DNA of 32,065 nt from Octopus bimaculoides (taxonomy: Eukaryota). The position numbers and the translations under genes are program-made. Shown in pieces: positions 2,111 to 32,065 of this stretch. Positions within the stretch are counted from its first letter, which is position 1. Each line of letters starts with the position of its first letter. Under the pieces are notes generated by a model. The model ran no database searches. It was not told the origin of the DNA and saw nothing but the letters and a program-made list of their open reading frames with translations. The stretch lies in contig NC_068981.1 of NCBI RefSeq assembly GCF_001194135.2, forward strand, positions 166,364,044 to 166,396,108, given 5' to 3'.

Positions 2111-2445
2111 CGTTGGCTCCCATCAAGACCTCACAATTGTGAGGAAAACAGAATTAATGACGATAGGGGTAAAATGGACGAAAAACATAAAATAAACCGG
2201 CAAAACATTAGCGAAAACCCGAACTCTGGCACACTGTTGCTGACATAGAAGACTAGTGTTCATCAGTGTTCTCGACGGCACCCTTACGATTGCATCTGAA
2301 GTCGAGGGTCCAAGCAAGGACACACACACACACACATGTGTGTATGTATGTATATGCAAGCATATAAATCCAAACTAAAGGGAAAAAAACATATTCAATA
2401 AATTATTTTATTGGAAGCAGAAAAGCTTCGCAAATGCGACGAGTG

Positions 2446-2464
2446 TAGTGACCCCTGGCGGTCA
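2446..2464 (-). promoter_or_regulatory. CTCF-like binding site
   Basis: Minus strand reads TGACCGCCAGGGGTCACTA, versus the canonical TGGCCACCAGGGGGCGCTA. Confidence 0.5.
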
Positions 2465-2525
2465 AGCAGGAAAGCAAAACGAAAAGGGGATGTAACGAGA
2501 GTAATCTCCCTCGACCATCTCGCAA

Positions 2526-2550
2526 ATTCGAGAAAATTCTAGAAACTTTC
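2526..2550. promoter_or_regulatory. Heat shock element (HSF site)
   Basis: aTTCg aGAAa aTTCt aGAAa cTTtc: four perfect alternating nTTCn/nGAAn pentamers plus one imperfect. A CRE/ATF-like TGACGTGG follows at ~2554. Confidence 0.75.
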
Positions 2551-2587
2551 AATTGACGTGGAAGTCGAGGACTTCGGAGTCATCCCT

Positions 2588-2627
2588 TATATAAAGCGAA
2601 CGCATTTCTAATTTCGCGCTCCTTTTG
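2588..2627 (+). promoter_or_regulatory. TATA box with TCT/TOP-like pyrimidine initiator
   Basis: TATATAAA at 2588-2595 and CTCCTTTT at 2619-2626, 31-34 nt downstream, in CpG-rich surroundings. Confidence 0.6.
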
Positions 2628-4444
2628 CCTGTCGGTTCCTAGGCGTACGCATTGAGCCACACCACTCACACGCACACACACCGCACGCGCGCATATTCGC
2701 CTCATTTTGCTTTAAGACATGTGGTCGCAAAGTATGTTCATGTAATATGTTACAAGCCTTTTCTTTCAAACCATTCTTATATGTTAACACATTACAGCCA
2801 GTAATAAATATGGTATGACTTATTATGAACGTCTCACAAGTTCTTATTTTTCTTGTGGTTTTACGTACAAGATGGTGACCACTCTTTCTCGCATGCAATC
2901 GTAAAATTGTAGGTTGTCCCATACTGACATCACTACACGAGTTTCGTTTTACTAATTTTGGGATCAAAAAAAGAAAGAAATTGATGCGAATACATCATTT
3001 TTCGTTCGAAGATCGGTAATGAGAAACTCGGAGTAACGATTTATGAAGTTTTTCAATTTCCAATAAAATTTCACGCGCGCGCGCATTGACAGTCCCGCAC
3101 AGATGACAGTATACGAACTGCATACAATTTGGACTGCAGCTCTTCATATTACATTGACTCAGCTCTCGATTACTGTTCTCTAAATAAACAACACAGTCTT
3201 AACAATTAATCAGTTCAACTTAATCTCACATCTCAGCCGGAACTGTTTTAATCCGTTGTTAATCCGATCATTTTTTATTATTTCACACTATTGTGACGTG
3301 TGGTCTAAGGTCGGAGGCAAAGCGTTCGACATATTTAGCCCGCTGCACGGTTTCGTTTCCCAATTTAAAATCTAAAAATTCTTCGTAGCTACCGCCTCTT
3401 CGTTTTATGGTTATATGATAAATAAAATATATAAATAAATAACACGATAGGAAAAAGAAAAAAAGAACCATACATTTCTTTCAAGGGGAAAAAGTTAACG
3501 ACCCGATTTTAATTTCTGCTGGGAGGTATTTTAATTAATTTCTGTTTTAAATGACAAAACATTTCCCAAAAGTTATTTGCTTAAATTTAACTGCTTACAT
3601 GCTGATAACTGTCAGTTGCAATGTTTTCACATTTGAGTTTTTCACTAATGTAGTAAATTAACTGTGTTGCTAAGGATATGACATAAACAATAAGCCTAAT
3701 TATTGTCACATTCAGACCCTGGTACACGCTAATACCATTTTTATATTAAACTATAGGTATAGTTTACCAGCATACTGCCTAATGGACATAACTTCCTACC
3801 CATTTATGTCTGAGAATATATTCTTAGTAAGGATTGAGCAGCCAAAAAAATGTGATGAATGATTTCTTTCAGAAAATTGCTTAATTTGCATTTGACAGCA
3901 GTCTTTTGTTTTGCTATTATTATTTATTATTTGCAGCGTGGAAGGTGTTTATAAGCCATTTAAGAAACACACAAAAACCGTTAGATTCACTTCAACATTT
4001 AAATTTAATTTGCCAAAATATTTTCGTCGTTTTGAGACCGCTACCTGTTCACTGACAAAATTCCGTTCTGCATCTCTTGGAATAGTATTTATTTATTTTG
4101 TATTGCTAGTGAAGCGAAACGCTTCCTTGATTCTTAACCAGGATTCGAAACCCAATCTAGATTTTTCTGTGAGTCCCCTTCCTATTCTTTTCGGCATTTT
4201 CTCTAAGCAATTTATTGAGAGTCAACTATCACATCTATATAAGGACTATTGTTTCTTGAGGATCCTTAGGTTAAATACAGTTCAAATCAGATTACAACGA
4301 AAAACCCTTTGTTAAGCCTAACCTAATTTATGTACGAAAATATTATAAATATAGGACCCAAATTCAATTGTTCCTCTTTCATCTGGCCCCTTGCTAAAGG
4401 AGTATTTGACGTATGACATGTCATCGAGGAAACATTCAACTTTC

Positions 4445-4585
4445 CGAAATTTTTGGGGAGGGGGCCAGTCGATTAGATCGACCCCAGTGCGCAATTGGTA
4501 CTTAATTTATCGACCCCGAAAGGATGAAAGGCAAAGTCGACCTCGGCGGAATTTGAACTCAGAACGTAACGACAGACAAAATACC
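4445..4585 (-). mobile_element. tRNA-derived SINE, 3' portion (B box and body), split by an insertion
   Basis: Minus strand has the B box GAGTTCAAATTCC and the body GGTCGACTTTGCCTTTCATCCTTTCGGGGTCGATAAA, shared with copies at 7310-7485, 12562-12710 and 18760-18935. Confidence 0.9.
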
Positions 4586-6223
4586 AATTTCTTTATTGCC
4601 CACCGGGGGCTAAACATAGAGGTGACCAGCAAAACATGTGGGACATAAAACATATATAAAAATAGAAATGAATGTTATAATGTATGAAGACATGAAATGA
4701 TAGAATGGAAATGGAACCACTCGCCCCACTTACGAGTGGTCTCATTTTCTACTTTTTAAATCCTGAACCTTCTAACACATCGATACCTGTTTCCTCCAAC
4801 CACCTATCGTATGTAGTAAATCCTTGGGATGAACTCCAGCTGCAGTCCACCTCCCAAAAATAAAATCGAACCATATACTCCTGTATTTTTCTCCCTGCCT
4901 CTTGTCTGGTATTACACACAAATGATGTTCCTCCACATTATCATACCCCGCAGTTCCAATACACTCTATATCCCATTCCGCCATATCCCTTAACAGTTCG
5001 TCACTAAGCAACATATAAATCCTACATTTTTTCCTTCTCTTTCTTTGACTTGGGGGAGGGGTTTTGGGTTTCTTTGTATGTATTTGCATCTTGTTTTTGT
5101 GTCGGATGGGAATGGATAGGCCTAGTGTCTGCAGGGAGTGGGTGGGTCTGAGAGGGTGTGGAATGTGGGTTACAGTTTAGCTCACTTGCCTTTTTTCGTT
5201 TTTTTCCTGTTACATTTTGCCATTTATTTTTTCCTGTTTCCGCTACTTCCTTTTCTTTTTCGGTTACTTCCTTTCTGCGGCTCTCTTCTATCTTCTCTTC
5301 CGCATTTTCTGGTCACTTTTTTCTTGGCTTTGATGTACATTCTGCTCTTATATGTCCCTTCAGGCCACATTTAAAGCAGCGTGGAACTCTTCCTTCCACC
5401 CTGACAGTCATAATTGTTTCTTCCATAATTATGGTTTCCGTAATCTTTTCCATCGTTTCTTTTGAACCTTGGACTATCATCTCCAGTTGACGCACTCTTT
5501 TTTTCTTGGCCTGGAGCACTACTCTGTTGTCCTCATTACCAAAGAGGACCGCATCTGCCACCCAGGTCACATCAATCTCCGGTGGAATTCCTTCAACCGT
5601 GACCCTTGTTGCTCTCATGCCTCTATACGTGGGCAACAGCACCACTTCTTCGCTCCGAATTGTCGACGCTGCATGTTTCCTTGCTGCTGCTGCATTACGA
5701 AACCTCACTTCTACTGTTTCAAATGTTGAACCTCTAGTCAGGTATATTATGTCTTCCCAAATCTGCTTTAACGCCTTTTCTATTTGTTCTGTCGTGACGA
5801 CGTCTATTTTCCCTTTATTTATCGAAAAGTTTCGATAGATTATCGTCTTTTCCCTTATTCTGTTTTTGCGGGGGTGACAGCTTCACTTCAAACCCATCTC
5901 GGTTCATTTCTTCTTTGTGTCTTCCGAATTCCCTAATGTCCACTTCTGTTTCTTTACACCTTGCTGCATCAGCAAAATTCCGCTTCTCTTTTATCAGTTT
6001 CTGATCCATTGTCTTAACTGCCTCCAACAACTCCTCCTCGGACGATGACATGCCTGAGTAACTATAACTGTCTTCAGACATTCTTCAACCAGCTGTCACT
6101 TCTCTTACGAGAAGAGAAAGCTCAAACAAATTACACACGTAAACACCGAAACCGCTGCAAAGCAGCACACACACAAAAGAAAACTATTCAAAAATCACCA
6201 CGTATTAACTTCACAAAGACGTT
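4586..6223 (-). mobile_element. ORF1-only non-LTR retrotransposon (Tx1/L1-like, HAL1-type), 1638 bp
   Basis: ATACC is duplicated at 4581-4585 and 6224-6228. It has a ~140 nt 5' UTR, a gag-like ORF1 and a ~185 nt 3' UTR ending GGGCAATAAAGAAATT. No endonuclease or RT coding sequence is present. Confidence 0.8.
4772..6081 (-). pseudogene. Disrupted gag-like ORF1 (putative RRM-like region plus CCHC zinc knuckle)
   Basis: ORF pieces 6081-5815, 5708-5313 and 5089-4772 are joined across frameshifts and stops. The knuckle is CFKCGLKGHIRAEC (CX2CX4HX4C), followed by an acidic/basic stretch and KWQNVTGKKRKK. Confidence 0.8.
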
Positions 6224-7309: not shown

Positions 7310-7485
7310 ATAATCCTTTCTACTATAAACACAAGGCCTGAAATTTGGGGCTAATCGATAACATCGACCCTAGTACTCGACTGGTACTTATTTTATCGAG
7401 CCCCAAAAGGATGAAAAGTAAAGTCGACCTCGGCGGAATTTGAACTCAGAACGTAAAGCCGAAAGAAATGCTTCGAAGCATTTTT
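7310..7485 (-). mobile_element. tRNA-derived SINE (partial)
   Basis: GTCGACCTCGGCGGAATTTGAACTCAGAACGTAAAG core, the same family as 4445-4585. Confidence 0.85.
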
Positions 7486-9872: not shown

Positions 9873-11694
9873 CTAGCAAACGCCCCACCCCCCGTCCATT
9901 GGACGGTTTGTATAGCTGAAACGGGTTAACTTGGACGGTGTTAAGTTGTGGAGATGTTTGGTGATTGTACGGGGTTGTTACTTTTGGTTAGGACATTAAA
10001 GATTCCTAAGACGTTAAAACTGTTGACAGTTTCTTCTAAATAAGGAAAATTGATTGATAGTGAACCTTTTCAAAATTGTCATGAGGCCAATAAAATGAAG
10101 GAAAACTGTTCCGCCCACAATATATACAACTTCCAGTGGAATCGGACATCATAATTAACCTTAAACTTTTTGCACACAAACACTTTCACATTAGGATAAG
10201 CACAATGTACTCTTCCATAGTACATGCCTCATGTTGACACCTATACGTCAGACTGAAGGCTGTTTTATCTCCAAAGTGAATATTGTAGGTGATATTTAAG
10301 CAATAAACAGTTCTTTGGCTTTTGCATTTGACGACTGTTGCTTTACATATTTTATTTCGATTTTCACTGGCGTAGTGGTAAGAAGTACGGGATACGTAAC
10401 ATTAGTTTCGAATAAAAATATAAATGGAAGTTTAAATCACCCTGTAGTGAACACTTCTATCGCCATTATATACAAACAAACCATCTTCTCTCACTATAAA
10501 TATTGACAGACGCGAGCGTAGTAGAAAGCAACTCATTCCCTGTCATCACCTGACTGACTATTTCTTTGCGCGGGTAAATTATCTCCACCCGTTCGCCTCA
10601 GGACGCAAACTGACCAACCACAGCCACTAATAAGGTCACGTGAGAGAGTTCTTCTAATGCTTCTCTGGAGCCTACCTTCAGCTATAAATAGACTAAATTA
10701 TACCCGCCAAATCGTCGCGCCTCAGATCGCCTAGATCTGGCCCCGACGTCGCCAGCAGCAACACGACTCTACGACTACCAGCATCGTCCCCAACAGCGTC
10801 AACATGACTCTACACGTACACACGATACCAACAGCTAACTACCGCAGCACTTCTCTTTGGCCTCAGGATGAGAAAGACACTATATATTGAGATCCATCGA
10901 AAAGATAACCCTGAGGCCACTTCTCTTCGATCCTGTTTGTGTGATTCATCTTCACCACGATAAATAACAGCCAAGAACCCAGCCTGCGAAGAACATCTGT
11001 ATTCAAGAACCCGGCTTGGCATGGAAGCCCTAACATCACAACTAGTGATCGCTCTGCCCCACACGCCTTAACTTCTTATATACAGACACTTACCACTGTG
11101 TACTCTAATTAAGAACGGGTAAATTCTTATACGTGTTACTGATTCTAATCTAACTCTGTATCTCACGCATTCACATACATGTATTACTCGCACACAAACT
11201 TTTCTTTACATGACGGCCTGTCTTTTATTGTGTTTCATTATGTCGCATTCACTCACACACAGACATACAATTTAAAACTACAATAAATCTTACTGTTATT
11301 CATCTATATCGGTTGTGTCAATATCGTCTTCCTTACTGGCCTTTACGAATTCTCTATGTTATCGAAGTATAGCATATTTATCAAATATATATTTTTGTGT
11401 TCGACCGTGTGACGCGTTATAATAAAGGAGCTTGTTTTTCCATTCGTCACCATTTCTCCTTTTGGGTTTGCACGGTCATTCTTACAACCCGATGGATAGG
11501 CAAACCGAAACTGCTACTCAATAAAGGCGCAAAAATGCTTAAGGAAGTCTCTCTTCTCTCAGAAACTGACACAAAAAGAGTTGAAACTCGGGGGTAAAAT
11601 AACACAATTTGCAATAAAATAACATAAGGCATGTTCTTTGCAAATCAATTTTAACTCAAAAATTGTACAATACCGCTTATTTTTTTAAGTTGGA
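9873..11694 (-). mobile_element. Non-autonomous Helitron-like element (~770 bp after removing the nested LTR)
   Basis: Minus-strand 3' end: hairpin CCGTCC-N3-GGACGG (9892-9906) 15 nt before CTAG (9873-9876), then T. Candidate 5' end A|TCC at 11695/11694. It interrupts the R4-like remnant at an AT dinucleotide with no TSD. Confidence 0.55.
10443..11486 (+). mobile_element. Solo Gypsy-type LTR (copy B)
   Basis: TGTA...TACA termini with 4-bp TSD ACCC (10439-10442 and 11487-11490). Homologous to copies A, C and D. Confidence 0.85.
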
Positions 11695-11950
11695 TGAGAA
11701 AGACACTATATATTGAGATCCATCGAAAAGATAACCCTGAGGCCAAAGAAATAAGGACCCACAGTATAGTAGAAACCATAGCTACTCATAATGGGGAGTA
11801 CTGATGAAATGTCCTAGTGAAAACCTCACTAAAATGTAAACATAATATACCTGACATAATGACTTAGGATAAAGGAAACTGTGTACAGTTGTGGAAATCA
11901 GCTACCCAGCAAATGTTAGCATAAAGCTTAAAGATCAGCGAAAAAAAAAA
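11695..11950 (+). mobile_element. R4/Dong-like LINE remnant, restriction-like endonuclease region (first part)
   Basis: KTLYIEIHRKDNPEAKEIRTHSIVETIATHNGEY**NVLVKTSLKCKHNIPDIMT*DK...VEISYPANVSIKLK carries the HN.PD..D..EIS RLE motif. Confidence 0.75.
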
Positions 11951-12561: not shown

Positions 12562-12710
12562 GGAGACTCTGAGTTCAAACACCGCCGAGATCGACTTTGC
12601 CTTTTATCCCTTTAGGGTTGATAAAATAAGTACCAGTGAGCACTGGGGTCTATGTAATTGACACCCCGCCCCCGAAATTGCTGACCTCGTACCAAAATTT
12701 GAAACTATTA
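12562..12710 (+). mobile_element. tRNA-derived SINE (partial)
   Basis: CTGAGTTCAAACACCGCCGAGATCGACTTTGCCTTTTATCCC...AAGTACCAGT. Confidence 0.85.
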
Positions 12711-18654: not shown

Positions 18655-18935
18655 ATTTTGACACAAGGCCAACAAATGGTGAGGTGGGAGTCTATTAGAT
18701 TGACCCTAGTGCGCAGATTCTGCCAACCCGCTGCCCTTTTAATGATAATCCTTTTTTCTATAGACTTAAGGCCTCAAATTTTGGAGGAGTGGGCTAGTCG
18801 AATACATCGACTCCACAGTTCAACTGCTACTGCATTTTTTTTTATCAACCTCGACGGAATTTGAACTCAGAACATAAAGCTGGGAGAAATACCGCTAGGC
18901 ATTTTGTCCGCAATTCTGCCAGCCCATCGCCTACA
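18655..18935 (-). mobile_element. Two adjacent tRNA-derived SINE fragments
   Basis: Two TCAAATTTTG tail motifs, then AATTTGAACTCAGAAC and GAAATACCGCTAGGCATTTTGTCC..TTCTGCCAGC. Confidence 0.75.
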
Positions 18936-19271: not shown

Positions 19272-20332
19272 CCAATCACGGCCCCTAATAAGGTCACGTG
19301 ATGGAGTAAAATTCTGAAGGCATTTGGAGCCCTCTTAACGCTATATATAGATCAACTCATACCCAATAATTTGTCTCGGTCCAGTTTCTCTTTGAGAACT
19401 GTTCCGTGTACCACACGACAGCAGCAGCAGCCAGCGACCACTTCAGCAGCTTCGTCCAGCCACGATGACCTCCGCCGTCGCCACATCAGCAACAAGAGTC
19501 TACTACTACTATCCAGCATCATTATCATGACCAACACGATTCTACGATTACTACTAACCAGCAACAATCTCCGCCAGCGTCTACACGACCTTCTATGTNN
19601 NNNNNNNNNNNNNNNNNNNNNNNNNNNNNNNNNNNNNNNNNNNNNNNNNNNNNNNNNNNNNNNNNNNNNNNNNNNNNNNNNNNNNNNNNNNNNNNNNNNN
19701 NNNNNNNNNNNNNNNNNNNNNNNNNNNNNNNNNNNNNNNNNNNNNNNNNNNNNNNNNNNNNNNNNNNNNNNNNNNNNNNNNNNNNNNNNNNNNNNNNNNN
19801 NNNNNNNNNNNNNNNNNNNNNNNNNNNNNNNNNNNNNNNNNNNNNNNNNNNNNNNNNNNNNNNNNNNNNNNNNNNNNNNNNNNNNNNNNNNNNNNNNNNN
19901 NNNNNNNNNNNNNNNNNNNNNNNNNNNNNNNNNNNNNNNNNNNNNNNNNNNNNNNNNNNNNNNNNNNNTGTTCACGTGTTATTGACTCTCTTTTTCTCTG
20001 CTGTAATATTTCTCATACACACATGTATCACTCACATACACACTTTTCTTTGTATGACAGTCTGTCTTTGATTATGTTCTTATATGTCGCATTCACACTC
20101 TCACACAGACATACATCTTTAACACTACAATAAATATATCTGTTATTCATCTTATACGGTTGTGGTCTTTCATTACTGGTCATCTATGTTATCGTCGCAT
20201 AACATATCATGTATATCATATTTGATATATATTTGTATGTTCGACCGTGTGACACGTTCAAATAAAAGGAGTCCTCTGTTTTTCCATTCGTCACCATTTT
20301 CCCTTTTTGAGTTCGCACGGTCGTCCCTTACA
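19272..20332 (+). mobile_element. Gypsy-type 5' LTR (copy C, 5'-truncated, spans a gap)
   Basis: Has the same promoter block as copy B, a 3' part nearly identical to 1-445, and ends CCCTTACA followed by a PBS. Confidence 0.85.
19599..19968. other. Assembly gap (N run)
   Basis: 370 N. Confidence 1.
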
Positions 20333-20551: not shown

Positions 20552-21580
20552 TGTAGCATACACTTGAGGAAAATTCCTCTCCTCTCGGTTATATATACAT
20601 ACGAATGTAGTAGAGGACAGCTATCCTTTGGCCGCATTTTGAACCCTGTTGTGTCCTCTACTCTGGTTGGTATTGGCACAATTTGTCTCTTGCTCTATAG
20701 CACGCCAATATGCAACCCAACCAATCGCAGCCTTCAAATAAGGTCATGTGAGGCAGTCTGTTCTCAACCCTAGTTTGAGCCAACTGCTCCCTATAAAACT
20801 CCAGCTTCTCATTGTCTTGATGTCTTTGGTTCCAGACCTTTTAAGGTCTAGCCACTGACCAAACAAGGCAGCCAATTCTAACAACAACACCAGACGACAA
20901 CACTCGTCCAACAGCATTACGGCAATCTCTTTCTTTGTTGCCATTAGCATCATCTCTCTATGTACACAGCAACCAGCAACTCGCACAGGTTCTAACACAA
21001 CACTGTTTGTGAATTACTTCACCATGGTTAACAGTAAATACAACCTGCAAGAACTCCTGTACCAAGTGACCCAGGCAGCAGCATCGCAGCCACAACTTCA
21101 CATATGACTTGTACCTCAATTGGCTCTGCATTGCAGCCACAACTTCACATATGACATGTACCTCAATCGGCTCTGCATCGCAGCCACAACTTCATGTACA
21201 ACGTACCTCAACCGGCTCTGCATCATCACCACAACTTCTTGATATGGCATTTCAACTATTGTGTGCAATTGACTATGAACTGGTATTTCTCATTCTTGTC
21301 TATGAACATTCTTCTAACTTCTCATTATAGACTCTTTCAATGCTCTGTACTTGACGCACACACAATCACACATGTTAACATATCAATATTCTGTACACCT
21401 GACACACACACCATCACACATATTAACATATCAATAAATCTTCTCTTAAACATTCTATCCGGTTGTGTCTCTCTTTTCCCTCTGGCTTGTATACGCATTT
21501 ATTCTTTTTATATTTATTGTATCGTCCATGTGATGTACTAAGGAGCCATGCTCGTCACGTCACTTTGCACGATCATTGGA
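20552..21580 (+). mobile_element. Diverged solo LTR (copy D)
   Basis: Starts TGTAGCATACACTT (copy B: TGTAGTGAACACTT) and ends TTTGCACGATCATTGGA (copy B: TTTGCACGGTCATTCTTACA). TSD GACC at 20548-20551 and 21581-21584. Confidence 0.7.
21081..21238 (+). repeat. 47-bp tandem repeat, ~3.4 units, inside LTR D
   Basis: Units GCATCGCAGCCACAACTTCACATATGACTTGTACCTCAATTGGCTCT start at 21081, 21128, 21175 and 21220 (partial). Confidence 0.9.
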
Positions 21581-22265: not shown

Positions 22266-23223
22266 TCGATACTCCTGGTTAGTAAATATACGCATCGAAT
22301 TCCAGCTTACATAGACAGGATGAAGACCAGAAGAAGGCATCCGAAATTCTCTCTTGAAGAACAAACAAAAATTTTCTTTTTATAAAATTTCTCATTTCTC
22401 TTTATTACTTTTTATTCTTTCACTTTTGGTTTGACTTTACTAAATTTTCATTTTTTTTTTCCTATTGATTGCAATGGTTGAATTTGTCACAACCAACAAC
22501 TGCAAATACCACTAAGATAATTTTGAGGAAACTCAATATCTTTCAGTCAGTGCAGTTTCAACATTTTTAGTTCTTAGCAAAATATAGACATGTTCAGCTC
22601 AATTGTACAGATGTGAATTTCTCAAGGAAGTACATACAATAAGGACTATAAACTCTTTTAATATGATTTTGGATGGTCAAATACTGATGGTCGTTTTTAT
22701 TTTTAATCCCAGATCATTCCGAATCGAGCAGACTTATGTTCAAAAATATTCCAATCGTAGTCATTTCTTATTTTGCAGACGTCTTCGAACACACTAGGAT
22801 TTTGTTTTTAAAGTAGGTAGGACCGTAATTTGAGGGAGATTTCTGGAAGGTCTAACAACCTAGTAGAGACTCCAAATATTGGCTAGAACCACAACATACA
22901 ACCTCAGTCTACTCTGTTTTTACTTCATTTGCTTCTTTACTTTTTCATATGCTTCTTTCCTTTTATTTCCTCTTTCCCTGCTCTCTTCTTCCTCTACTTC
23001 TTTATTTCATTGATTTATATATCAGTTTAGGAAAACTAGTGCCTTATCAATTTTCAGTTGCTGCATTACTAATGTTTTTTTAGTTTGAACCCAACCTCAT
23101 GCAATATACCGAGCATTTTCGACGGAATTCTGGTTTAAGCACCCTAATAACTTTCTTATTTTTTGGAATTTTCAGAAATGTTTTGCGAATTAGTGTTCTA
23201 CACACGGGAATTTTGTGATTTAA

Positions 23224-23513
23224 CCCATTACCTACCAGTGATCTCATATGAGATCACTTAAAAATTACAAATTTCGTAATTATCTGTCAATATTTACACA
23301 TATCTAACCTTTTTGCTATATCTACTAGGGATATTTCTCTGATATTCAAATGAGGTTTGCTAATTTTTCACCCAATATCTCGCTTATTTCTATTTAAAAT
23401 GTTATTTTGAAATGTTATTTTGATCATTCCAGCATGTTTCTAAGACTGTTTTATGCTAGAAATCAAAGTTTCATAAAAAAACTTCAGTTAATAGAATTAT
23501 GGAAGGTAATGGG
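23224..23513. mobile_element. piggyBac-type MITE
   Basis: TTAA|CCCATTACCTACC ... GGAAGGTAATGGG|TTAA (TIR matches 12/13). Confidence 0.8.
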
Positions 23514-25269
23514 TTAAGGGCAATTTAGCTGTTGCATTTAGTATATCTCACAACCATCTGATACCGCCTACGTTTCTTTGCTACTCTGACATGTATTGAT
23601 GTTTTTCAATATATTTCTCCCCATAAACACATTTAATGGAAGGATGATGCACCCAGGGGTGGTCCACTGCTGAGATTTTAGCAAAAAATTTGGACTGTCC
23701 ATCCCTCCTGCCAACCAGTCTTAAAAGCCTTCTAAAAAAAAAAAAAGAATCATGAATTCTGCCTTCCTTCTTCATCCCCCCCCCCACACACACCCCTACA
23801 TGCAAAAATCTCTCTTGATATATTATTGCAATAACTAATGGTCTTGGTGATGGAAAGGGATGGTATTTATGGTAGTTGGGTTGCTAGGATGAAGATTCTA
23901 GTAATGATTAGGATGGCTTTTGTTATGTTTAGTCTCCAAGTCAACTCTGACTGGACAAATCTCTGATCAATGATATTCAAGTCATGATTATCCACTCATT
24001 TCTCTCTCTCTCTCCTTCTCCTTTTTTTTTTTATAATAGTATGCCAGAACTATATTACCCAATGTGTCTTTCTTTTAAGACAGTGGGGTGTGGTTTGAGT
24101 GAGATTTGACTGCAGTCTAGAGATCTCTCCATATAGCATCCAAATAGAACAGGAGGCTTTCTTAGGTGTTTGCAGTAAAAATATTGATGTTGGTTGTAGT
24201 AATGACATTGATAACGATGGCAGTACTCATGGTAGTGTTCATGATAATGCACCAATATATAAATGTCAACTGTTGTATAATAAATGTGGTAATGTCAACT
24301 GCAAGATCATAATAAAAATGGTGTCAGTATGCACGAGAAACAATTTTCTAGTTGTACCACCAGCCGGTTTTCCTTTTTTTTTTTATAATTTTAATTTTGT
24401 GTGAGAAAATAAAAGTAAGCTTCTTCGGCAAGCCAGCTAAGTCTGTGACACAGATTTGATTTGTTAGTTGTTACAATTTTTTTTTTTATTGCACCTCTTA
24501 AAAATGCACGTCCTACAGTTGTGAGTCTTTTGCTCTTCTTCACCATCATCATCATCATTAAAGAACTCATTTGATGGTGGGGAGGTGAATTAGTGTAAAG
24601 GCTTAAGATATTGCATTTTGATTTCATATGACTGCAAAAGAGACTAATAGTTAAAGTACCTAACTTAATAAGTACTGGAGTTGATTTGTTTGATTGTATC
24701 CTTTAAGGTAGTTCCCCTCCATGGCCACAGTCCAATGACTGAATCGAGGAAAAGATAAGATAAAAGAAACTATAGATATCAAACTTTTCATAATTTCACT
24801 CTTTCACTAAATCTTTAATTGAGGATATTTTAATCTTTTCCCATTCTGGAGTGCTATATTCAGAGATTCAGTTGGTTATACAAATTCCACTGTTTTTCTA
24901 GTAATAATTTTATCAACTTTCAAAAGAGTAAAAAAAAAGCAAAGTTCACACGAACAGTCATGGTGAGAACACCTTATATTTATATCCGCTATACATAGAG
25001 AGCTTTCAATCAAATACTATGCAAATATTATTGTAATAATATAACTGCTATTAAATTGAAGTATTTTGTTGTTTTGTTTCTCACACTCCTTGTTGTTGCT
25101 GTCATGTTTTTCTTTGTTACCTGTGAGGATTTTGTAGTCAGATTTTAAGTTTTACATTTTCTTCTAGTTCACCACTACTTCCCATTTCCTTAACCTTTTG
25201 ATACAAATATACTTGAAACCCACTCCCATTTCAGCTCTGTGTCACAAAATCTCAGATCTTTATGTTTAA

Positions 25270-25486
25270 CCCTTTTGATACCAACCTGTCTGAGACTGCT
25301 CCTGGTTCTGTGACAAAAATTTTGTTTAAAAGTGATCTAAATTAAAACTTCCCATCAAAATTCCATGTCAATTATGCCCCAAATACCAGCTTAATAGCAA
25401 AAGCTATTTTACTAAATTCTCCATTATTTTCAAAAGTAATTGAAACAAAGACAGTGTATTTCAATAGAAACATGGTAACGAAGGAG
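25270..25486. mobile_element. piggyBac-type MITE
   Basis: TTAA|CCCTTTTGATACC ... GGTAACGAAGGAG|TTAA. A partial relative follows at ~25565-25645. Confidence 0.7.
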
Positions 25487-27184
25487 TTAAATGAAAACCA
25501 ATCATGAATCAAAGTTATGCTTCAAACATTATTAGTTTGTTAGCAGAGAAGTTAGTTTTATATATTCCATCAAATTCATAAATATTTTCAAAAATAACTG
25601 GAAGATGGTGTATTTCATCAGAAATATGGTAATACTAGCATTAAACTCTATTACTTTCATGCCATTTGTAATTTCTCTTTTGTTTGTATGGAATAAGTAT
25701 TGTCTTTTTATTTTTCACAATTTATCATTTCAATCCAGTTAGTAAAATTTGAGTCTACAGATCATTATACATAAATGATATAGAATCAGTTAGATATCTT
25801 ATAAAATTTAGTTTATGATACAAGTTCAACAGTGGCTTTCCAGACACTGATGGTCCCAAACCTCTGTAGTGCTCCAAACTCCCACTGTTAAATACTTAGA
25901 CATCTTGAGTAAGCCACCACAGTTTCACATGGTGAATCAACAAGTCAGTGTGAGGCTGTGGCATGATATGACTTCTCAAATGTTTTAGAATTTACCCTCT
26001 TTCCATTCCATAAAAACCATTTGGCACCTAGCTTAGCAGGCAGTTGACCATGAGAATTTGAGCAGACAGCTCCAGACTTTTATGCTAATTACTTCAGGTA
26101 TTCGAACAGACTGACTTTGAAATATTCACACAATGTCCCTTAAGTAGGTTTCTATGGACACAGCACTGTTTCCTCTCCTCCCAGTCAGCAATTGTATTAA
26201 CATTTTCCACTGTAAATAGCCAACACAAATATTATGTCCAGCGATAAATATTACAGTTAAAGGTTTGTGAGTTTGTTTCAGTAATTATTCATGCAGCTAA
26301 CACTTTCCACATTGCTACAATACAACACCAACAAGCACCTCGCAACAATGGTGATAAAGCCATCCATAGTGACAATAGCGACTCAGACATTCACAATATA
26401 TTATCATTGGCCATCTCAACACAAAACAACCAAGCAATTAAACAACACCTCTTAAAATCCACATTAATTTACAAGCAGGAACTTCAAATTCCTGAAATTG
26501 CCAGACTAGTATTCTGGTACCTTACACTGACTAGTACCTTCTACAGTACAGTATTAATAAACTTGTATCATTTATACTAATATACAAGTACCTGTATTTT
26601 ATTTGATTATATAAGTTAATTTAATATTTGTTTAATTTAGAGTGTGTTGGCCAAAGTGACCACCCCTGGTTTAGAAAAGTCAGTAATCGTGAAAGGCTTT
26701 GAAGCCAAAGGCTCAAGAAAATCGATGCTGTACCTGTATCTAATTGTGCCTATGACAACTGTTTTTATCTCTTGACTGTCAAGACAAAGATTGCCAACAT
26801 CTCTTCTTAATATTCTAGCAGAAGGAAAACTCTGGTTTGTATTATTGGCATTTAGGTCATATTTGGATCTGATCAATCGGAGGTGTTCAAATTGTGACCA
26901 TCCCATCTCTAAGTATTTTTTTGGCTACAGTGCACTGATCTTTATTTTAGCTGCTATGGTGTGATATGAGGGAGATTTAACTGCTATTTCTAATAAATTG
27001 ATTGTAATGTAGTAGCACCCTTGTTGACTCAGCTTGGAAAGAATTACTTGATATTTCAGTTTCCTACATACTGACGAAATGCAGCTAAGCATTCTGTTTG
27101 GTATGCTAACAATCCTACCAATTCACCATCTTGACAATGATAATGATGATGATAGGAGGATGCTGACGATAATAATAATGTCTT

Positions 27185-27747
27185 GATGCAGTACCAGACA
27201 GTGGCTTTCAAGGCATTTGATCTTTACTGATTGGAAGTGTTATCATGTACATTGTTTTGTCTTGGTATAAAAGATGGGCTACAGCAAATATTCTGCTCAA
27301 TACCACAGACTTGCTTGTCAGTTTCTTGACCATGACCATTTGAGCATGTCACTTAGTGACTGATGATATGTGCATCTCTGATCACAAACAGAAGTAGTGG
27401 GGGAGCATCATAGCCATGTGTTGAAAGTCTTTGGGATTTGAATAATTCACCTCTTGAAACATGGGTGTTTTGTTCATCATCCTTAAACAAACCTTATTCA
27501 GGGACCTTTTGAGCAGGTGGGACTACTCCTCCTGAAGAAAATTCTAATTGGGCTCCCACCTGCAAAGTCATGCACCGTTAATCTTGATATAAGATCACCA
27601 TGTCATGCACATATGGTTGTGATGCATGTACCTGGTGTACCCTTATCAGACGGGTAGTAATGATGGGTATACTGGGCTTCGTATATTTTACTCCAGTGTC
27701 ACTTTGATGGCACGCACTGTTCTCTCATTCAATAATAATAATAATAA
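27185..27747 (+). mobile_element. Probable LINE 3' UTR or long SINE ending in an (AAT)n tail
   Basis: GC-richer non-coding block ending CTCTCATTC(AAT)6. I recall it as an abundant octopus repeat; not verified. Confidence 0.5.
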
Positions 27748-28129
27748 TTTCAAATTTTGCCACAAGCACAGCAGTTTTGGGGGAGAGGATGAGTCGATTA
27801 CCACAGCTTTCACCAATCTCCTCACTTCATTTATTACCTCTGCTCCCTCTCCCACCATTTTAGTTGTCATCATATATTATTGAAACCTGTTGCTGCTGTG
27901 GAAATAAGAATACTTACCAAATGCTTTATAAAGAACACTTATAAAAGTGGATCACTAAAGTTTCACATTTCTGCTTTTCAGATGACTGGTGATGTTATCT
28001 GTATTGGTTGTATTTATTGTGAAGCAATCACATAGATAAATTAGCACAATGATACTGTAATGCTCTCATGTAAAACAACACTAGTGATTCAGAATTAAAT
28101 ACAATTAACAAACAAATAGCGGAGACACA

Positions 28130-28350
28130 TTGCTTAGAAGTTAGGATGGTGAACTCATGATTGTAAGATTGAAGTTTTGATTCCTGGACCAGGCAATTCA
28201 TTGTGTTCTTGAACAAAACACTTCATTTCATGTTGCTCCTGTCCACTCAGCAGCTAAAAATGAGTAATCCTGTGACAGATTGGCATCCCATCCAGGGTGG
28301 AATATATATATATATATATGCCAGGGAAACCAAGAAACCAGCCCTGTGCT
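28130..28350 (+). mobile_element. SINE (CORE-like, degenerate)
   Basis: tRNA-like head, TGTGTTCTTGAACAAAACACTT core, and GGCATCCCATCCAGGG followed by (TA)n. Confidence 0.6.
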
Positions 28351-28384
28351 CCTCATGGAGTTATGTGAACTAACCAGTTCTTTT

Positions 28385-28600
28385 TACATGTTTAAGTCAT
28401 TTTACTACAGCCATGCTGGAGCACCACCTTTAAAGGGCTTTAATCAAAGAAATAGACCCCGAAACTTATTCTTTGTGAGCTTAGTGCTTATTCTATTGGG
28501 CTCCTTTGCCAAACTGTTAAGTTATGGGGATGTAAACACACCAACATCGGTTGTCAAGCGATGGTGAGGGGACAAACACAGATGCAAAGACACACAAATA
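28385..28600 (-). mobile_element. SINE 3' part, same family as 15872-16245
   Basis: GCCATGCTGGAGCACCACC ... GTTAAGTTATGGGGATGTAAACACACCAACATCGGTTGTCAAGCGATG is the reverse complement of 16060-16215 with CpG decay. A (TA/CA)n tract follows to ~28675. Confidence 0.85.
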
Positions 28601-29722
28601 TATATATATGTATATACACACACACGCATATATATATATATATATGCATATATATATATATATATACACACACATACCACCAACAGGCTCAATATAGATG
28701 TACTATACCATATTGTAAGAGCAAAGTTAGACAAAGAGAAGCTTGTTTTAACAGACATTTCTATCATTTTCTGTTTATCATCATAATTTTAATGTTTGTT
28801 TTTTCATGTTTGCATGGATTCAATAGGTCTGCAGCATAGCACACTACTACTATTGATCTTGTTTCATATTCTCTGTGACATCCAATTATGCTGAGACTCA
28901 ATTTAATTACTTCCTCCCATATTTTTCTTTTGTCTCTTCAGTTGACATAGGAATGATTTGAGATACATAGTAATACACACTTGTCTTAAATATAGATATA
29001 TATATATTAATATAAAACTATATTAAGGGTTAGCTTTTGGACTTCTTGATTGTATTCCTAATGTCCTGTCATTTACAATATACGTTATTGATCAACCAAA
29101 CAATTTACATAAACATAATTTGTTAATCTTTCTTAGAATCAGCAAGAAGTTGGTCGGTGGCACAATTTCTGTTGCAAGATACTGATCTCTGTTTCACAAG
29201 AGAACATAACTGGGACTTGTCAATTTAAACAAAGTATTTTTAATTACTTTTTCCTCAATGCCTTCATACTAACATGAAATAGGGTTATCCAGTCATGACT
29301 GTACAGCTGTAGTAGCATTATAATTTTTTTTTTTTTTGTGCGTGTGTATGTGTGATACATAATATCTATTGGAGCATGTATAATGCCAACTGCAACACCC
29401 TTCTTCTTTTCACAATGAATAAACTGTTCATTTGAAAAACCAAAATCTGATTAAGCCAGTGAGAAACCTCTGTCTGTGAGAGTGAACCTTTTTTTTCCCC
29501 ACCCAGTGCATTAAAATTTTAATTTCTTAGACAAACTTAAGATTTCGATTTAAAAATTTTGCTGCTATTTCAAGAGCAGGGCAAGTAATGAAGTACACAC
29601 TACTTCATTGACTCTTCCTTTCCTATTCATATTTACCCTGCAGACATCAAGCTGCAAAAGCTAAGCTGAATTAGTTCGACCTGTCTGAGAGAGCCTGCAA
29701 AAGCTTGATCATTGCTCCTTAA

Positions 29723-29915
29723 CCTTTTGCCCACCCAAAGCATTTTCATAAGTTTATCCTTAGTATACATGCTTGAGTGATATAAAGCTTTCTTTTTATA
29801 AGTTCCAATTTACTCTAATGGTTGAAAAAATTGGGAATTTGCATTATACATGATGCATGGAAGTCAGGGAAATATGTCTTGTTTATCATATGTGATACAC
29901 AGGACAGGCAAAGGG
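29723..29915. mobile_element. piggyBac-type MITE
   Basis: TTAA|CCTTTTGCC ... GGCAAAGGG|TTAA. Confidence 0.65.
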
Positions 29916-30193
29916 TTAAAAACAAAAAAGTAAAGAGAAGTTTTTCCATCAAATTTTGAGACCTAATTTTCATTACTAGTTTTAACCACAAAGCTTAATT
30001 TATATTGGTAATATATTTATGCTATAAATCTAAAATACTATTTCCATCAAGGTGTAGAAATATTGATATTTCACCACATACTTAAATTTTTAAATGGTTA
30101 TGTAGTTTCTCTTTCTTCCTTCCTTCCTTTCTTTTTCTTTCTTCACCAACTGAAAAATGTTAAGAGGAATGAATTGTGTGTGTGTGTGTGTGT

Positions 30194-30596
30194 NNNNNNN
30201 NNNNNNNNNNNNNNNNNNNNNNNNNNNNNNNNNNNNNNNNNNNNNNNNNNNNNNNNNNNNNNNNNNNNNNNNNNNNNNNNNNNNNNNNNNNNNNNNNNNN
30301 NNNNNNNNNNNNNNNNNNNNNNNNNNNNNNNNNNNNNNNNNNNNNNNNNNNNNNNNNNNNNNNNNNNNNNNNNNNNNNNNNNNNNNNNNNNNNNNNNNNN
30401 NNNNNNNNNNNNNNNNNNNNNNNNNNNNNNNNNNNNNNNNNNNNNNNNNNNNNNNNNNNNNNNNNNNNNNNNNNNNNNNNNNNNNNNNNNNNNNNNNNNN
30501 NNNNNNNNNNNNNNNNNNNNNNNNNNNNNNNNNNNNNNNNNNNNNNNNNNNNNNNNNNNNNNNNNNNNNNNNNNNNNNNNNNNNNNNNNNNNNNNN
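30194..30596. other. Assembly gap between (TG)n and (TA)n microsatellites
   Basis: 403 N, with (TG)n at ~30175-30193 and (TA)n at 30597-30643. Confidence 1.
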
Positions 30597-30648
<52 letters not shown>

Positions 30649-30904
30649 CTCATTTTTATGTTTACTTTTCCTTATTTGAATGGGTTGGACAGATCCTTTC
30701 TAATACGCCATCTCGCCATTTAAAAGAGTATTGTAAAATACTTGAAACATTGTAATGTGTAAATGCTATAAATATTAGAAAAAAAATCTTTAAGCAATGC
30801 AGGTGAGAACTTAAGCAGGATATGTACCATACTGCCAACAAGTAAAAACAAAAACATCATGTTGTGTTACCTTACATAGGTTGTTTAATGCTTCTATTAT
30901 ATTT

Positions 30905-31255
30905 GTGGAAAGATTTCCCTCGTCAAATATAGTCTCACTGGCACTCTGTCAGTTACGATGACAAGGGTTCTAGTTGATCCAATCAATCGAACAGCCTGCT
31001 CATGAAATTAACATGCATGTGGCTGGGCACTCCACAAACACATGTAGCGTTAACATAGTTTTCAGGGAGATTCAACATGACGCAGTATGAGAAGGCTAGC
31101 CCTTTGAAATACAGGTACTATTCATTTTTGCCAGCTGAGTAGACTGGAGCAATGTGAAATAGTCTTGCTTGAGGACCCAACACCTCAAAAGGAATTGACT
31201 TCACGACCTTGCAGTCATGAGCCAAATACCCTAACCACTAAGTCACATGCGTTCA
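30905..31255 (-). mobile_element. SINE (CORE-like)
   Basis: Minus-strand head ...GACTTAGTGGTTAGGGTATTTGGCTCATGACTGCAAGGTCGTGAAGTCAATTCC and core TCCTCAAGCAAGAC..TTTCACATTGCTCCAGTCTACTCAGCTGGCAAAAATG. Confidence 0.75.
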
Positions 31256-31752
31256 CCTATCAAATATAAGAAAGAAAATAATCCCAGAGTTCATGAGAAA
31301 GTGTTGCTATTGGCAGGCCAGTCTAGGGTGTTGTAATGAAAAGCATTGATGAATTAGATACTTCGGTCCAGTCTTACTGTGTGAAAGTTTTATATCAATC
31401 TGATTTATTTGCGTTCAATAATATATCCTTGGCATGCATTACATGTTTTACATTTGTACAAGAGACCAACACTGATATATATGCATATGTTTGTCTGTGC
31501 AGGTGCACACATATGTGCATTGATATGTTTATGTTTATTTGCATATATTTTTTTTATTTGTGACTACAGTATTTGTAATTCTAAAATTTTCATTGAAGAA
31601 AACTTTAACTCCTTATTCCATAAACATCATGCTTTGAGAATTTCCTTGCAGTTTGACAACTGTCTTTGTCATTAAGCTGAACATTTTGAAGGCCAGGAAT
31701 ATATTTGCATATATATTTAAATATGTATAAATAAATACACGTGTGTGTGTAT

Positions 31753-31787
<35 letters not shown>

Positions 31788-31796
31788 GATAGATAG

Positions 31797-32065
31797 GTTT
31801 CTTTATTAGCCACACAGGGCTCAACACAGAGGGGACAAAATACAAATGTAGAGTTTTTCTTTTCGAGGGGGTCGAAAACAAAGCAGAAAGAAAACAAAAG
31901 TGGGGACAACGATGAAAAAAAAACATCGCAAAACGTTTGGGGTATTTACAAAAAATACGAAATAATACAAAAAATTCCCAATAAATGGGGAGGTTATCCG
32001 TGGAAAGAAAAACCTACGAAAAGACCACGGTAACCTCGGTCTTTAGCGTCACACTTTGGTAAATA
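31797..32065 (-). mobile_element. 3' end of a Tx1/L1-like LINE (continues past the window end)
   Basis: T-rich 3' UTR ending CCCCTCTGTGTTGAGCCCTGTGTGGCTAATAAAGAAA next to a (GATA)/(TA)n tract. The terminus is homologous to that of 4586-6223. Confidence 0.7.

Follow-up and report, generated by a model that had tools for sequence, protein, structure and literature searches.

What does a heat-shock-type promoter serve when no heat-shock gene is recognisable behind it? The question is raised by a stretch of 32,065 nucleotides of the Octopus bimaculoides genome (here the window), near the start of which a multi-unit HSE stands just upstream of a TATA box. The window is about 36% G+C, rich in microsatellites and populated by several interspersed repeat families, and it contains assembly gaps at 19599-19968 and 30194-30596. 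A preliminary description of this DNA had suggested that the promoter may drive either a stress-induced lncRNA or a gene whose first intron is very long. When the promoter is placed into the context of its immediate surroundings, a different reading is favored. The promoter is most likely a transposon's own rather than that of a host gene, and the segment of 494 bp that contains it can be read as the solo LTR of an LTR retrotransposon whose promoter acquired a strong HSE, a reading to which we assign a probability of about 0.65. The features on which the argument draws are collected in Table 1.

Table 1. Features of the 494-bp unit and its flanks, by position in the window (a dot is entered for features without an assigned strand)
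Feature	Position	Strand	Remarks
Left target-site duplication, CGAG	2440-2443	.	direct reading and terminus scan
Putative solo LTR	2444-2937	+	494 bp; TG..CA inverted ends, flanking CGAG/CGAG
Putative LTR subdivision, U3	~2444-2619	+	
Putative LTR subdivision, R	~2620-2836	+	
Putative LTR subdivision, U5	~2837-2937	+	
CTCF-like site CCGCCAGGGGTCACT	2447-2461	-	extreme 5' end of the 494-bp unit
HSE TTCgaGAAaaTTCtaGAAacTTT	2527-2549	.	four perfect alternating units and a near-perfect fifth (TTT); direct reading
TGACGTGG	2554-2561	+	between HSE and TATA box
TATA box TATATAAA	2588-2595	+	direct reading
Predicted transcription start, U3/R boundary	2619-2623	+	pyrimidine-rich gCTCC; placed by spacing only
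ATG in ATGTGGTCGCAAA, then GTATGT donor-like site	2719-2737	+	donor G at 2732, CAAA/GTATGT
AATAAA polyadenylation signal	2803-2808	+	cleavage probably at the CA dinucleotides of 2835-2838
T/GT-rich downstream element TTCTTATTTTTCTTGTGGTTTT	2841-2862	+	after AATAAA at 2803
Right target-site duplication, CGAG	2938-2941	.	direct reading and terminus scan

Promoter motifs and the search for a downstream gene

The arrangement of the motifs supports assignment as an HSF-type promoter, with a multi-unit HSE upstream of a TATA box. At least three contiguous alternating nGAAn units are present near the core promoter, the center of the HSE precedes the predicted start by about 80 nt, and that start would in turn fall 31 to 34 nt past the TATA box. 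Direct reading places the HSE, TGACGTGG, TATATAAA, the pyrimidine-rich start, and the donor at 2732 exactly where the preliminary description had put them, and the HSF-driven architecture that it had proposed, a multi-unit HSE directly upstream of TATA, is borne out at the level of motifs.

Among these motifs, only the HSE clearly exceeds chance. Its perfect four-unit form occurs a single time in the 32 kb and is reproduced in none of 100 dinucleotide-preserving shuffles, and even with one mismatch allowed only 0.14 occurrences would be expected in the window. By comparison, TGACGTGG, which we take to be a bZIP core of the CRE/ATF or UPRE type, occurs once against 0.41 expected and is by itself not above chance, and TATA-like octamers are frequent across the AT-rich window. 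The CTCF-like site that had also been pointed out is present, with two mismatches to the consensus CCASYAGRKGGCRSY, one of which falls on a highly conserved G of the core, but such sites are no more frequent than chance would allow (two observed, 0.81 expected). As the CTCF-like site, TGACGTGG, and the TATA box all occur at chance frequency, the observation rests on the HSE and on its position 39 bp before the TATA box.

These frequencies bear directly on whether the motifs could form a functionless chance cluster. Three of them would be consistent with such a view, and simple arithmetic leads one to expect some perfect HSEs beside TATA boxes in a genome of several Gb. The failure of the shuffles to yield a perfect four-unit HSE argues in the other direction, as does the coincidence of the HSE not only with a TATA box but also with a poly(A) site and bounded termini (see below), and we consider a chance cluster very unlikely.

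The sequence behind the promoter was searched in several ways. When every ORF that runs from stop to stop over at least 43-44 aa (150 on the plus strand and 149 on the minus strand) was scanned against Pfam, no chaperone domain emerged, and tblastn with seven human proteins of the heat-shock response (HSPA1A, HSPB1, DNAJB1, HSP90AA1, ubiquitin, HSPE1, and HSPD1) gave a best E value of 0.37. The plus-strand ORFs of at least 40 aa past 2732, when concatenated, had no matches at E <= 1e-3 among 5.8 billion proteins, a search of such reach that exons under 40 aa or lineage-specific exons would escape it. Scans with Rfam (at the gathering threshold) and ARAGORN found no RNA gene in the window. In the 29 kb downstream, no exon of Hsp70, Hsp90, sHSP, DnaJ, Hsp60, Hsp10, or ubiquitin is recognisable, nor is any other exon. 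The earlier remark that Hsp70, Hsp90, and small-Hsp sequences are missing downstream therefore holds for 29 kb in the Pfam, tblastn, and ORF searches alike, and neither a chaperone nor another heat-shock-response gene, which would place the locus in the class of heat-shock genes, is found behind the promoter within this stretch.

The only match of the Pfam scan is a CCHC zinc knuckle ORF (5316-5882, minus strand), which is also the only protein-like feature of the window. In the database search, this ORF had one relative only, a UniRef protein of Octopus bimaculoides (P0001), with 75% identity over 26% of the query. Look-ups for the exact products of the ORF and of P0001 gave no record. Among the repeats, a SINE-like core, GGAATTTGAACTCAGAAC, is found on the plus strand at 4537, 7424, and 18845, with an inverted copy at 12568; it has no matches in metagenomes.

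Boundaries and internal order of the 494-bp unit

The entire HSE/TATA promoter is enclosed by a unit whose two ends, TGTAGTGA at 2444-2451 and TCACTACA at 2930-2937, are complementary at 8 of 8 positions and form a TG..CA inverted repeat. The whole window was scanned for TG..CA units of 150-2000 bp with an inverted terminus of at least 8 bp and a 4-bp flanking duplication, and two such structures were found, compared with 0.73 per 32 kb in first-order Markov simulations. About 3% of random structures of this kind would enclose any given 100-bp segment. The chance that a bounded structure frames the promoter is then about 0.02, or 0.02-0.07 if other acceptable combinations of terminus and duplication are allowed, a figure that is post hoc, as the TG..CA ends were sought deliberately before being found. 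The probability of these termini and this duplication around the promoter is suggestive, not conclusive.

The contents of the unit follow a defined order, from the inverted end through the HSE, the bZIP-like site, the TATA box, and the predicted start to a poly(A) site about 215 nt further on, which is followed after about 100 nt by the second inverted end. At the level of motifs, the TATA box, the predicted start, the AATAAA signal, and the T/GT block are consistent with the U3-R-U5 organization of an LTR. The poly(A) site is a feature independent of the termini, and its AATAAA begins 183 nt past the predicted start. Only 2 of the 44 plus-strand AATAAA motifs in the window, this one included, are followed by a T/GT-rich block, and the chance of finding such a pair within a few hundred bases of the predicted start is about 0.01-0.02. 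A minus-strand reading of the unit was rejected, as the sole minus-strand AATAAA with a T-rich block lies at 2412, outside the unit.

Because the unit carries a poly(A) site of its own, a short transcript is predicted unless that site is bypassed or the donor at 2732 is used. The plus-strand transcript that had been envisaged to run on through an ORF1-only element and SINEs is for this reason not favored. The same short distance between promoter and poly(A) site could suggest a self-contained host gene, namely, a heat-inducible, unspliced, polyadenylated ncRNA of about 215 nt from 2620 to about 2836. The unit also lacks a plausible ORF, as the ATG at 2719, the only one of the predicted 5' segment, opens 8 codons when unspliced and a later one at 2747 opens 23. 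Such a gene would leave both the inverted TG..CA termini and the CGAG duplication unexplained and has no match in Rfam, and we regard it as highly improbable.

The boundaries, by comparison, are what would be looked for in an LTR. Short inverted TG...CA termini are present, a target-site duplication within the range of 4-6 bp directly flanks the single unit, and neither an internal gag-pol region nor a partner LTR is found nearby in the window. The 32 kb contain no further copy of the unit, whether intact or diverged, and the Pfam scan of both strands of the window was likewise empty for RT, RNase H, integrase, and protease domains. A duplication placed directly around one unit that has neither a partner copy nor retrotransposon enzyme domains in the window points to a remnant of LTR-LTR recombination, that is, a putative solo LTR, and this anatomy would explain the missing heat-shock gene. 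Target-site duplications of 4 bp are typically left by Ty3/gypsy or BEL-type elements; assignment to any named LTR family needs the internal coding region, which is absent from a solo copy. The pattern formed by the HSE and TGACGTGG had no matches in metagenome, GTDB, and viral collections. If the insertion is real, the empty site would read ...GCGACGAGTTTCG..., with a single CGAG and without the 494-bp insert.

Terminal inverted repeats and a 4-bp target duplication could also be accommodated by a nonautonomous, MITE-like DNA transposon, for example, of the Ginger or Sola type with TGT..ACA ends, that carries promoter-like motifs only incidentally. Ginger elements do have TGT ends. Such elements usually have long terminal inverted repeats, whereas the repeat here is just 8 bp; the internal order from promoter to poly(A) site suits an LTR, and the Pfam scan of both strands revealed no transposase domain nearby. 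A DNA transposon thus seems barely probable.

Two further structures in the neighborhood were considered. A weak inverted repeat (2405-2435 and 3039-3069, matching at 25 of 31 positions) flanks the 494-bp unit. It could mark the ends of a 167-bp MITE that received the LTR, a possibility given little weight because of the AT-rich composition of the repeat and the lack of a clear target duplication. A link between the putative LTR and the neighboring CCHC element was set aside, as the two lie on opposite strands with no LTR copy in common, and as the duplication sits directly around the single LTR.

Host promoter or promoter of a transposon

The most substantial alternative retains the promoter for the host. 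In this scenario, an HSF-driven promoter would serve a stress-inducible lncRNA or coding gene, with an exon at about 2620-2731 spliced from 2732 across an intron of more than 29 kb. A strong HSE properly placed upstream of a TATA box is what such a promoter would show, and the only ATG lies 13 nt before the GTATGT donor, as it might in a host first exon. Set against this, no plus-strand exon is recognisable in 29 kb, a canonical poly(A) site follows the donor by about 70 nt, and the TG..CA termini and 4-bp duplication must be dismissed as coincidence, at a probability of about 0.02-0.07.

The distribution of CpG could be taken to speak for a host gene as well. The region is CpG-dense, with observed/expected ratios of 1.23-1.45 in the unit (1.43 in U3 and 1.23 for the unit as a whole), whereas the window averages 0.67, and a strongly CpG-depleted domain that begins at about 22.5-23.6 kb could start at the first internal exon of a long gene. 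CpG density was nevertheless rejected as evidence of a CpG-island host promoter, as copies of the window's repeat families are equally dense (130-445, 11172-11488, and 20016-20332, with ratios of 1.2-1.4). It also does not delimit the unit, as the dense zone runs on past its end at 2937 to about 3500. According to one report, transposons of octopus are CpG-dense and carry essentially no methylation, and a CpG-depleted domain in octopus marks a gene with a methylated body and broad expression (PMC9476566). Methylated octopus genes are broadly expressed and not inducible, which argues against the host reading. Taken together, we consider a host promoter unlikely. The lncRNA or long-intron gene of the preliminary description is consequently not the best reading of a promoter that lies between TG..CA ends and a 4-bp duplication and is followed by a poly(A) site within the same unit.

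If the 494-bp unit is indeed a solo LTR, a straightforward mechanism can be proposed from its motifs. The four- to five-unit HSE in U3 would be occupied by HSF trimers during proteotoxic stress, and Pol II would thereby be brought to the TATA-driven core promoter, with a predicted start of transcription near 2620. The product of a full-length element would be a heat-induced genomic RNA that begins in the 5' LTR and is terminated at the AATAAA/GU-rich site of the identical LTR at the 3' end. The copy described here would have lost its interior through LTR-LTR recombination, with one LTR left between the copies of the duplication. Its output would then be limited to a short RNA of about 215 nt with a poly(A) tail or, alternatively, to an occasional read-through or spliced chimeric transcript that uses the 2732 donor, located ahead of the poly(A) signal. 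It is conceivable that the solo LTR also acts as a heat-responsive enhancer.

It could further be speculated that this LTR stands for a multicopy family that is still or was recently active in cephalopods and gained its multi-unit HSE independently, and that solo LTRs scattered by it provide host transcripts in octopus with heat-inducible promoters or enhancers, much as Helitrons do in Caenorhabditis. We offer this extension tentatively, as one with a rather small chance of being correct as a whole. About half of octopus genomes consists of repeats, and transposons there are not silenced by DNA methylation (PMC9476566). With repeats so abundant and unsilenced by methylation, stress-triggered transcription of transposons and heat-responsive solo LTRs could matter for genome evolution and thermal biology. 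If the solo-LTR reading is true, the locus is neither an orphan heat-shock gene nor a new stress lncRNA but a transposable-element promoter with a captured host heat-shock switch. For annotation, it suggests that clusters of HSE plus TATA without a gene need to be checked for transposon boundaries before they are labeled as host promoters.

Comparison with known heat-responsive systems

The octopus promoter resembles hsp70-type host promoters in having at least three alternating nGAAn units within about 100 nt of a TATA-driven start. It differs from them in that no chaperone CDS is found in 29 kb and in that the unit has transposon-type ends and its own poly(A) site. Drosophila hsr-omega offers another host parallel, with an HSF-type promoter that has no chaperone ORF behind it. 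The hsr-omega gene contains a long tandem-repeat tract, and TRF detected no such array near the octopus promoter, only microsatellites and a 47-bp repeat of 3.4 copies 18 kb away. An hsr-omega-like lncRNA was therefore rejected on the basis of this result and of the poly(A) site about 215 nt past the predicted start.

Mobile elements provide closer parallels. Helitrons are not known to have terminal inverted repeats or target-site duplications, and their ends read 5'-TC...CTRR-3'. Both features are present in the octopus unit, with its TG..CA inverted ends and its 4-bp duplication, and it is therefore not one of these elements. A functional likeness may nonetheless be drawn with Helitron1_CE of Caenorhabditis, a transposable element that spreads HSEs and, by distributing HSF sites, can render neighboring genes heat-inducible (PMC6927752).

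HSE-bearing, heat-activated LTRs are already known, and the strongly validated cases are few, namely, ONSEN in Brassicaceae and several Ty3 families in a single flatworm. A cephalopod case, if true, would add a mollusc lineage and would be the third validated one after ONSEN and Macrostomum. The octopus unit is likened to both by the layout of its promoter, not by sequence similarity. ONSEN (ATCOPIA78) is a plant Ty1/copia element with a target duplication of 5 bp, and the octopus unit would represent a convergent acquisition rather than a member of the ONSEN family. In Arabidopsis, canonical HSEs in the LTR promoter of ONSEN confer strong heat induction (PMC3907296) and are bound by heat shock factor, such that the host heat response is exploited (PMC3907296, PMC5059998); in octopus, binding by HSF is predicted from the HSE.

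The comparison with the flatworm Macrostomum lignano brings the octopus unit next to elements of another spiralian host. In several of its Ty3/Mdg4 families, canonical HSEs upstream of the LTR start confer more than 250-fold induction, which is abolished by HSE mutation (PMC12801592). The evidence there comes from RNA-seq and reporter mutation, whereas the octopus unit is a single solo copy read from sequence and has no RT by which to place it in a clade. The Mag, CsRN1, and Gmr1/Osvaldo elements of Macrostomum carry one to four canonical HSEs upstream of the start in a TATA-type LTR promoter, and solo LTRs exist among the Ty3 elements (PMC12801592), as we propose for the octopus unit. The 4-bp target duplication of the octopus unit adds to this likeness, as it would fit the Ty3/gypsy or BEL superfamilies.

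Sequences around the LTR-like unit

The LTR-like unit (2444-2937, + strand), a putative solo LTR carrying a heat shock element promoter, is enclosed by the two arms of an AT-rich inverted repeat (see table). When the unit and one copy of CGAG, the 4-bp direct repeat that flanks it, are taken out, the arms would delimit a MITE-sized element of ~167 bp. As no clear target duplication was found at the inverted repeat, it may be a product of chance.

The whole-window scan for stretches with LTR-type inverted ends and a 4-bp flanking repeat (TG..CA units) also returned two others. The one at 10336-10763 is rich in G+C and CpG and could be a second solo LTR; the one at 25816-26570 is AT-rich and is probably a chance occurrence.

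The zinc-knuckle open frame is a retroelement remnant of gag/ORF1-like type. Its sole relative, a UniRef protein from Octopus bimaculoides, carries the annotation of an ISXO2-like transposase domain. The frame lies on the strand opposite to the LTR-like unit and is unrelated to it.

Features of the window
Feature	Position	Strand	Details
AT-rich inverted repeat	2405-2435 / 3039-3069		25/31 paired, outer 12 perfect
SINE-like core, three copies	4514-4597, 7401-7484, 18845-18905	+	
SINE-like core, one copy	12568-12635	-	
CCHC zinc-knuckle open frame	5316-5882	-	189 aa; Pfam zf-CCHC, E = 3.5e-4
TG..CA unit	10336-10763		CGAC 4-bp flanking repeat, 7-bp inverted terminus
TG..CA unit	25816-26570		TTTA 4-bp flanking repeat, 8-bp inverted terminus
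~320-bp repeat, three direct copies	130-445, 11172-11488, 20016-20332		
54-bp direct repeats, two	10866-10919, 11692-11745		100% identical, 826 bp apart
47-bp tandem repeat	21081-21238		3.4 copies, 87% matches

Dispersed repeat families

The outer copies of the ~320-bp repeat share 96% identity, and the middle copy is ~70-83% identical to the other two; all three are CpG-dense, with an observed/expected (o/e) CpG ratio of 1.2-1.4. The middle copy is flanked by the 54-bp direct repeats, which are longer than a normal target-site duplication would be and could reflect local duplication or an assembly artefact.

The SINE-like core, present in four copies in the window, contains GTCGACCTCGGCGGAATTTGAACTCAGAACGTAA. 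No tRNA genes were detected by ARAGORN within the copies, and an exact search of the JGI metagenome collection with a 25-mer of the core gave 0 matches.

The CpG-depleted right end of the window

The 47-bp tandem repeat lies immediately upstream of a CpG-depleted domain.

Across this domain (22500-32065), the CpG o/e is 0.14-0.23, compared with ~0.6-1.1 across 1-22 kb. The drop is sharp, with its boundary at ~22.5-23.6 kb, and the G+C content is the same on both sides. Exons were sought here on both strands, with Pfam on the - strand, and none was recognised. The domain resembles the margin of a methylated gene body running past the right end of the window; in octopus, methylation is found only within the gene bodies of genes with broad expression (PMC9476566).
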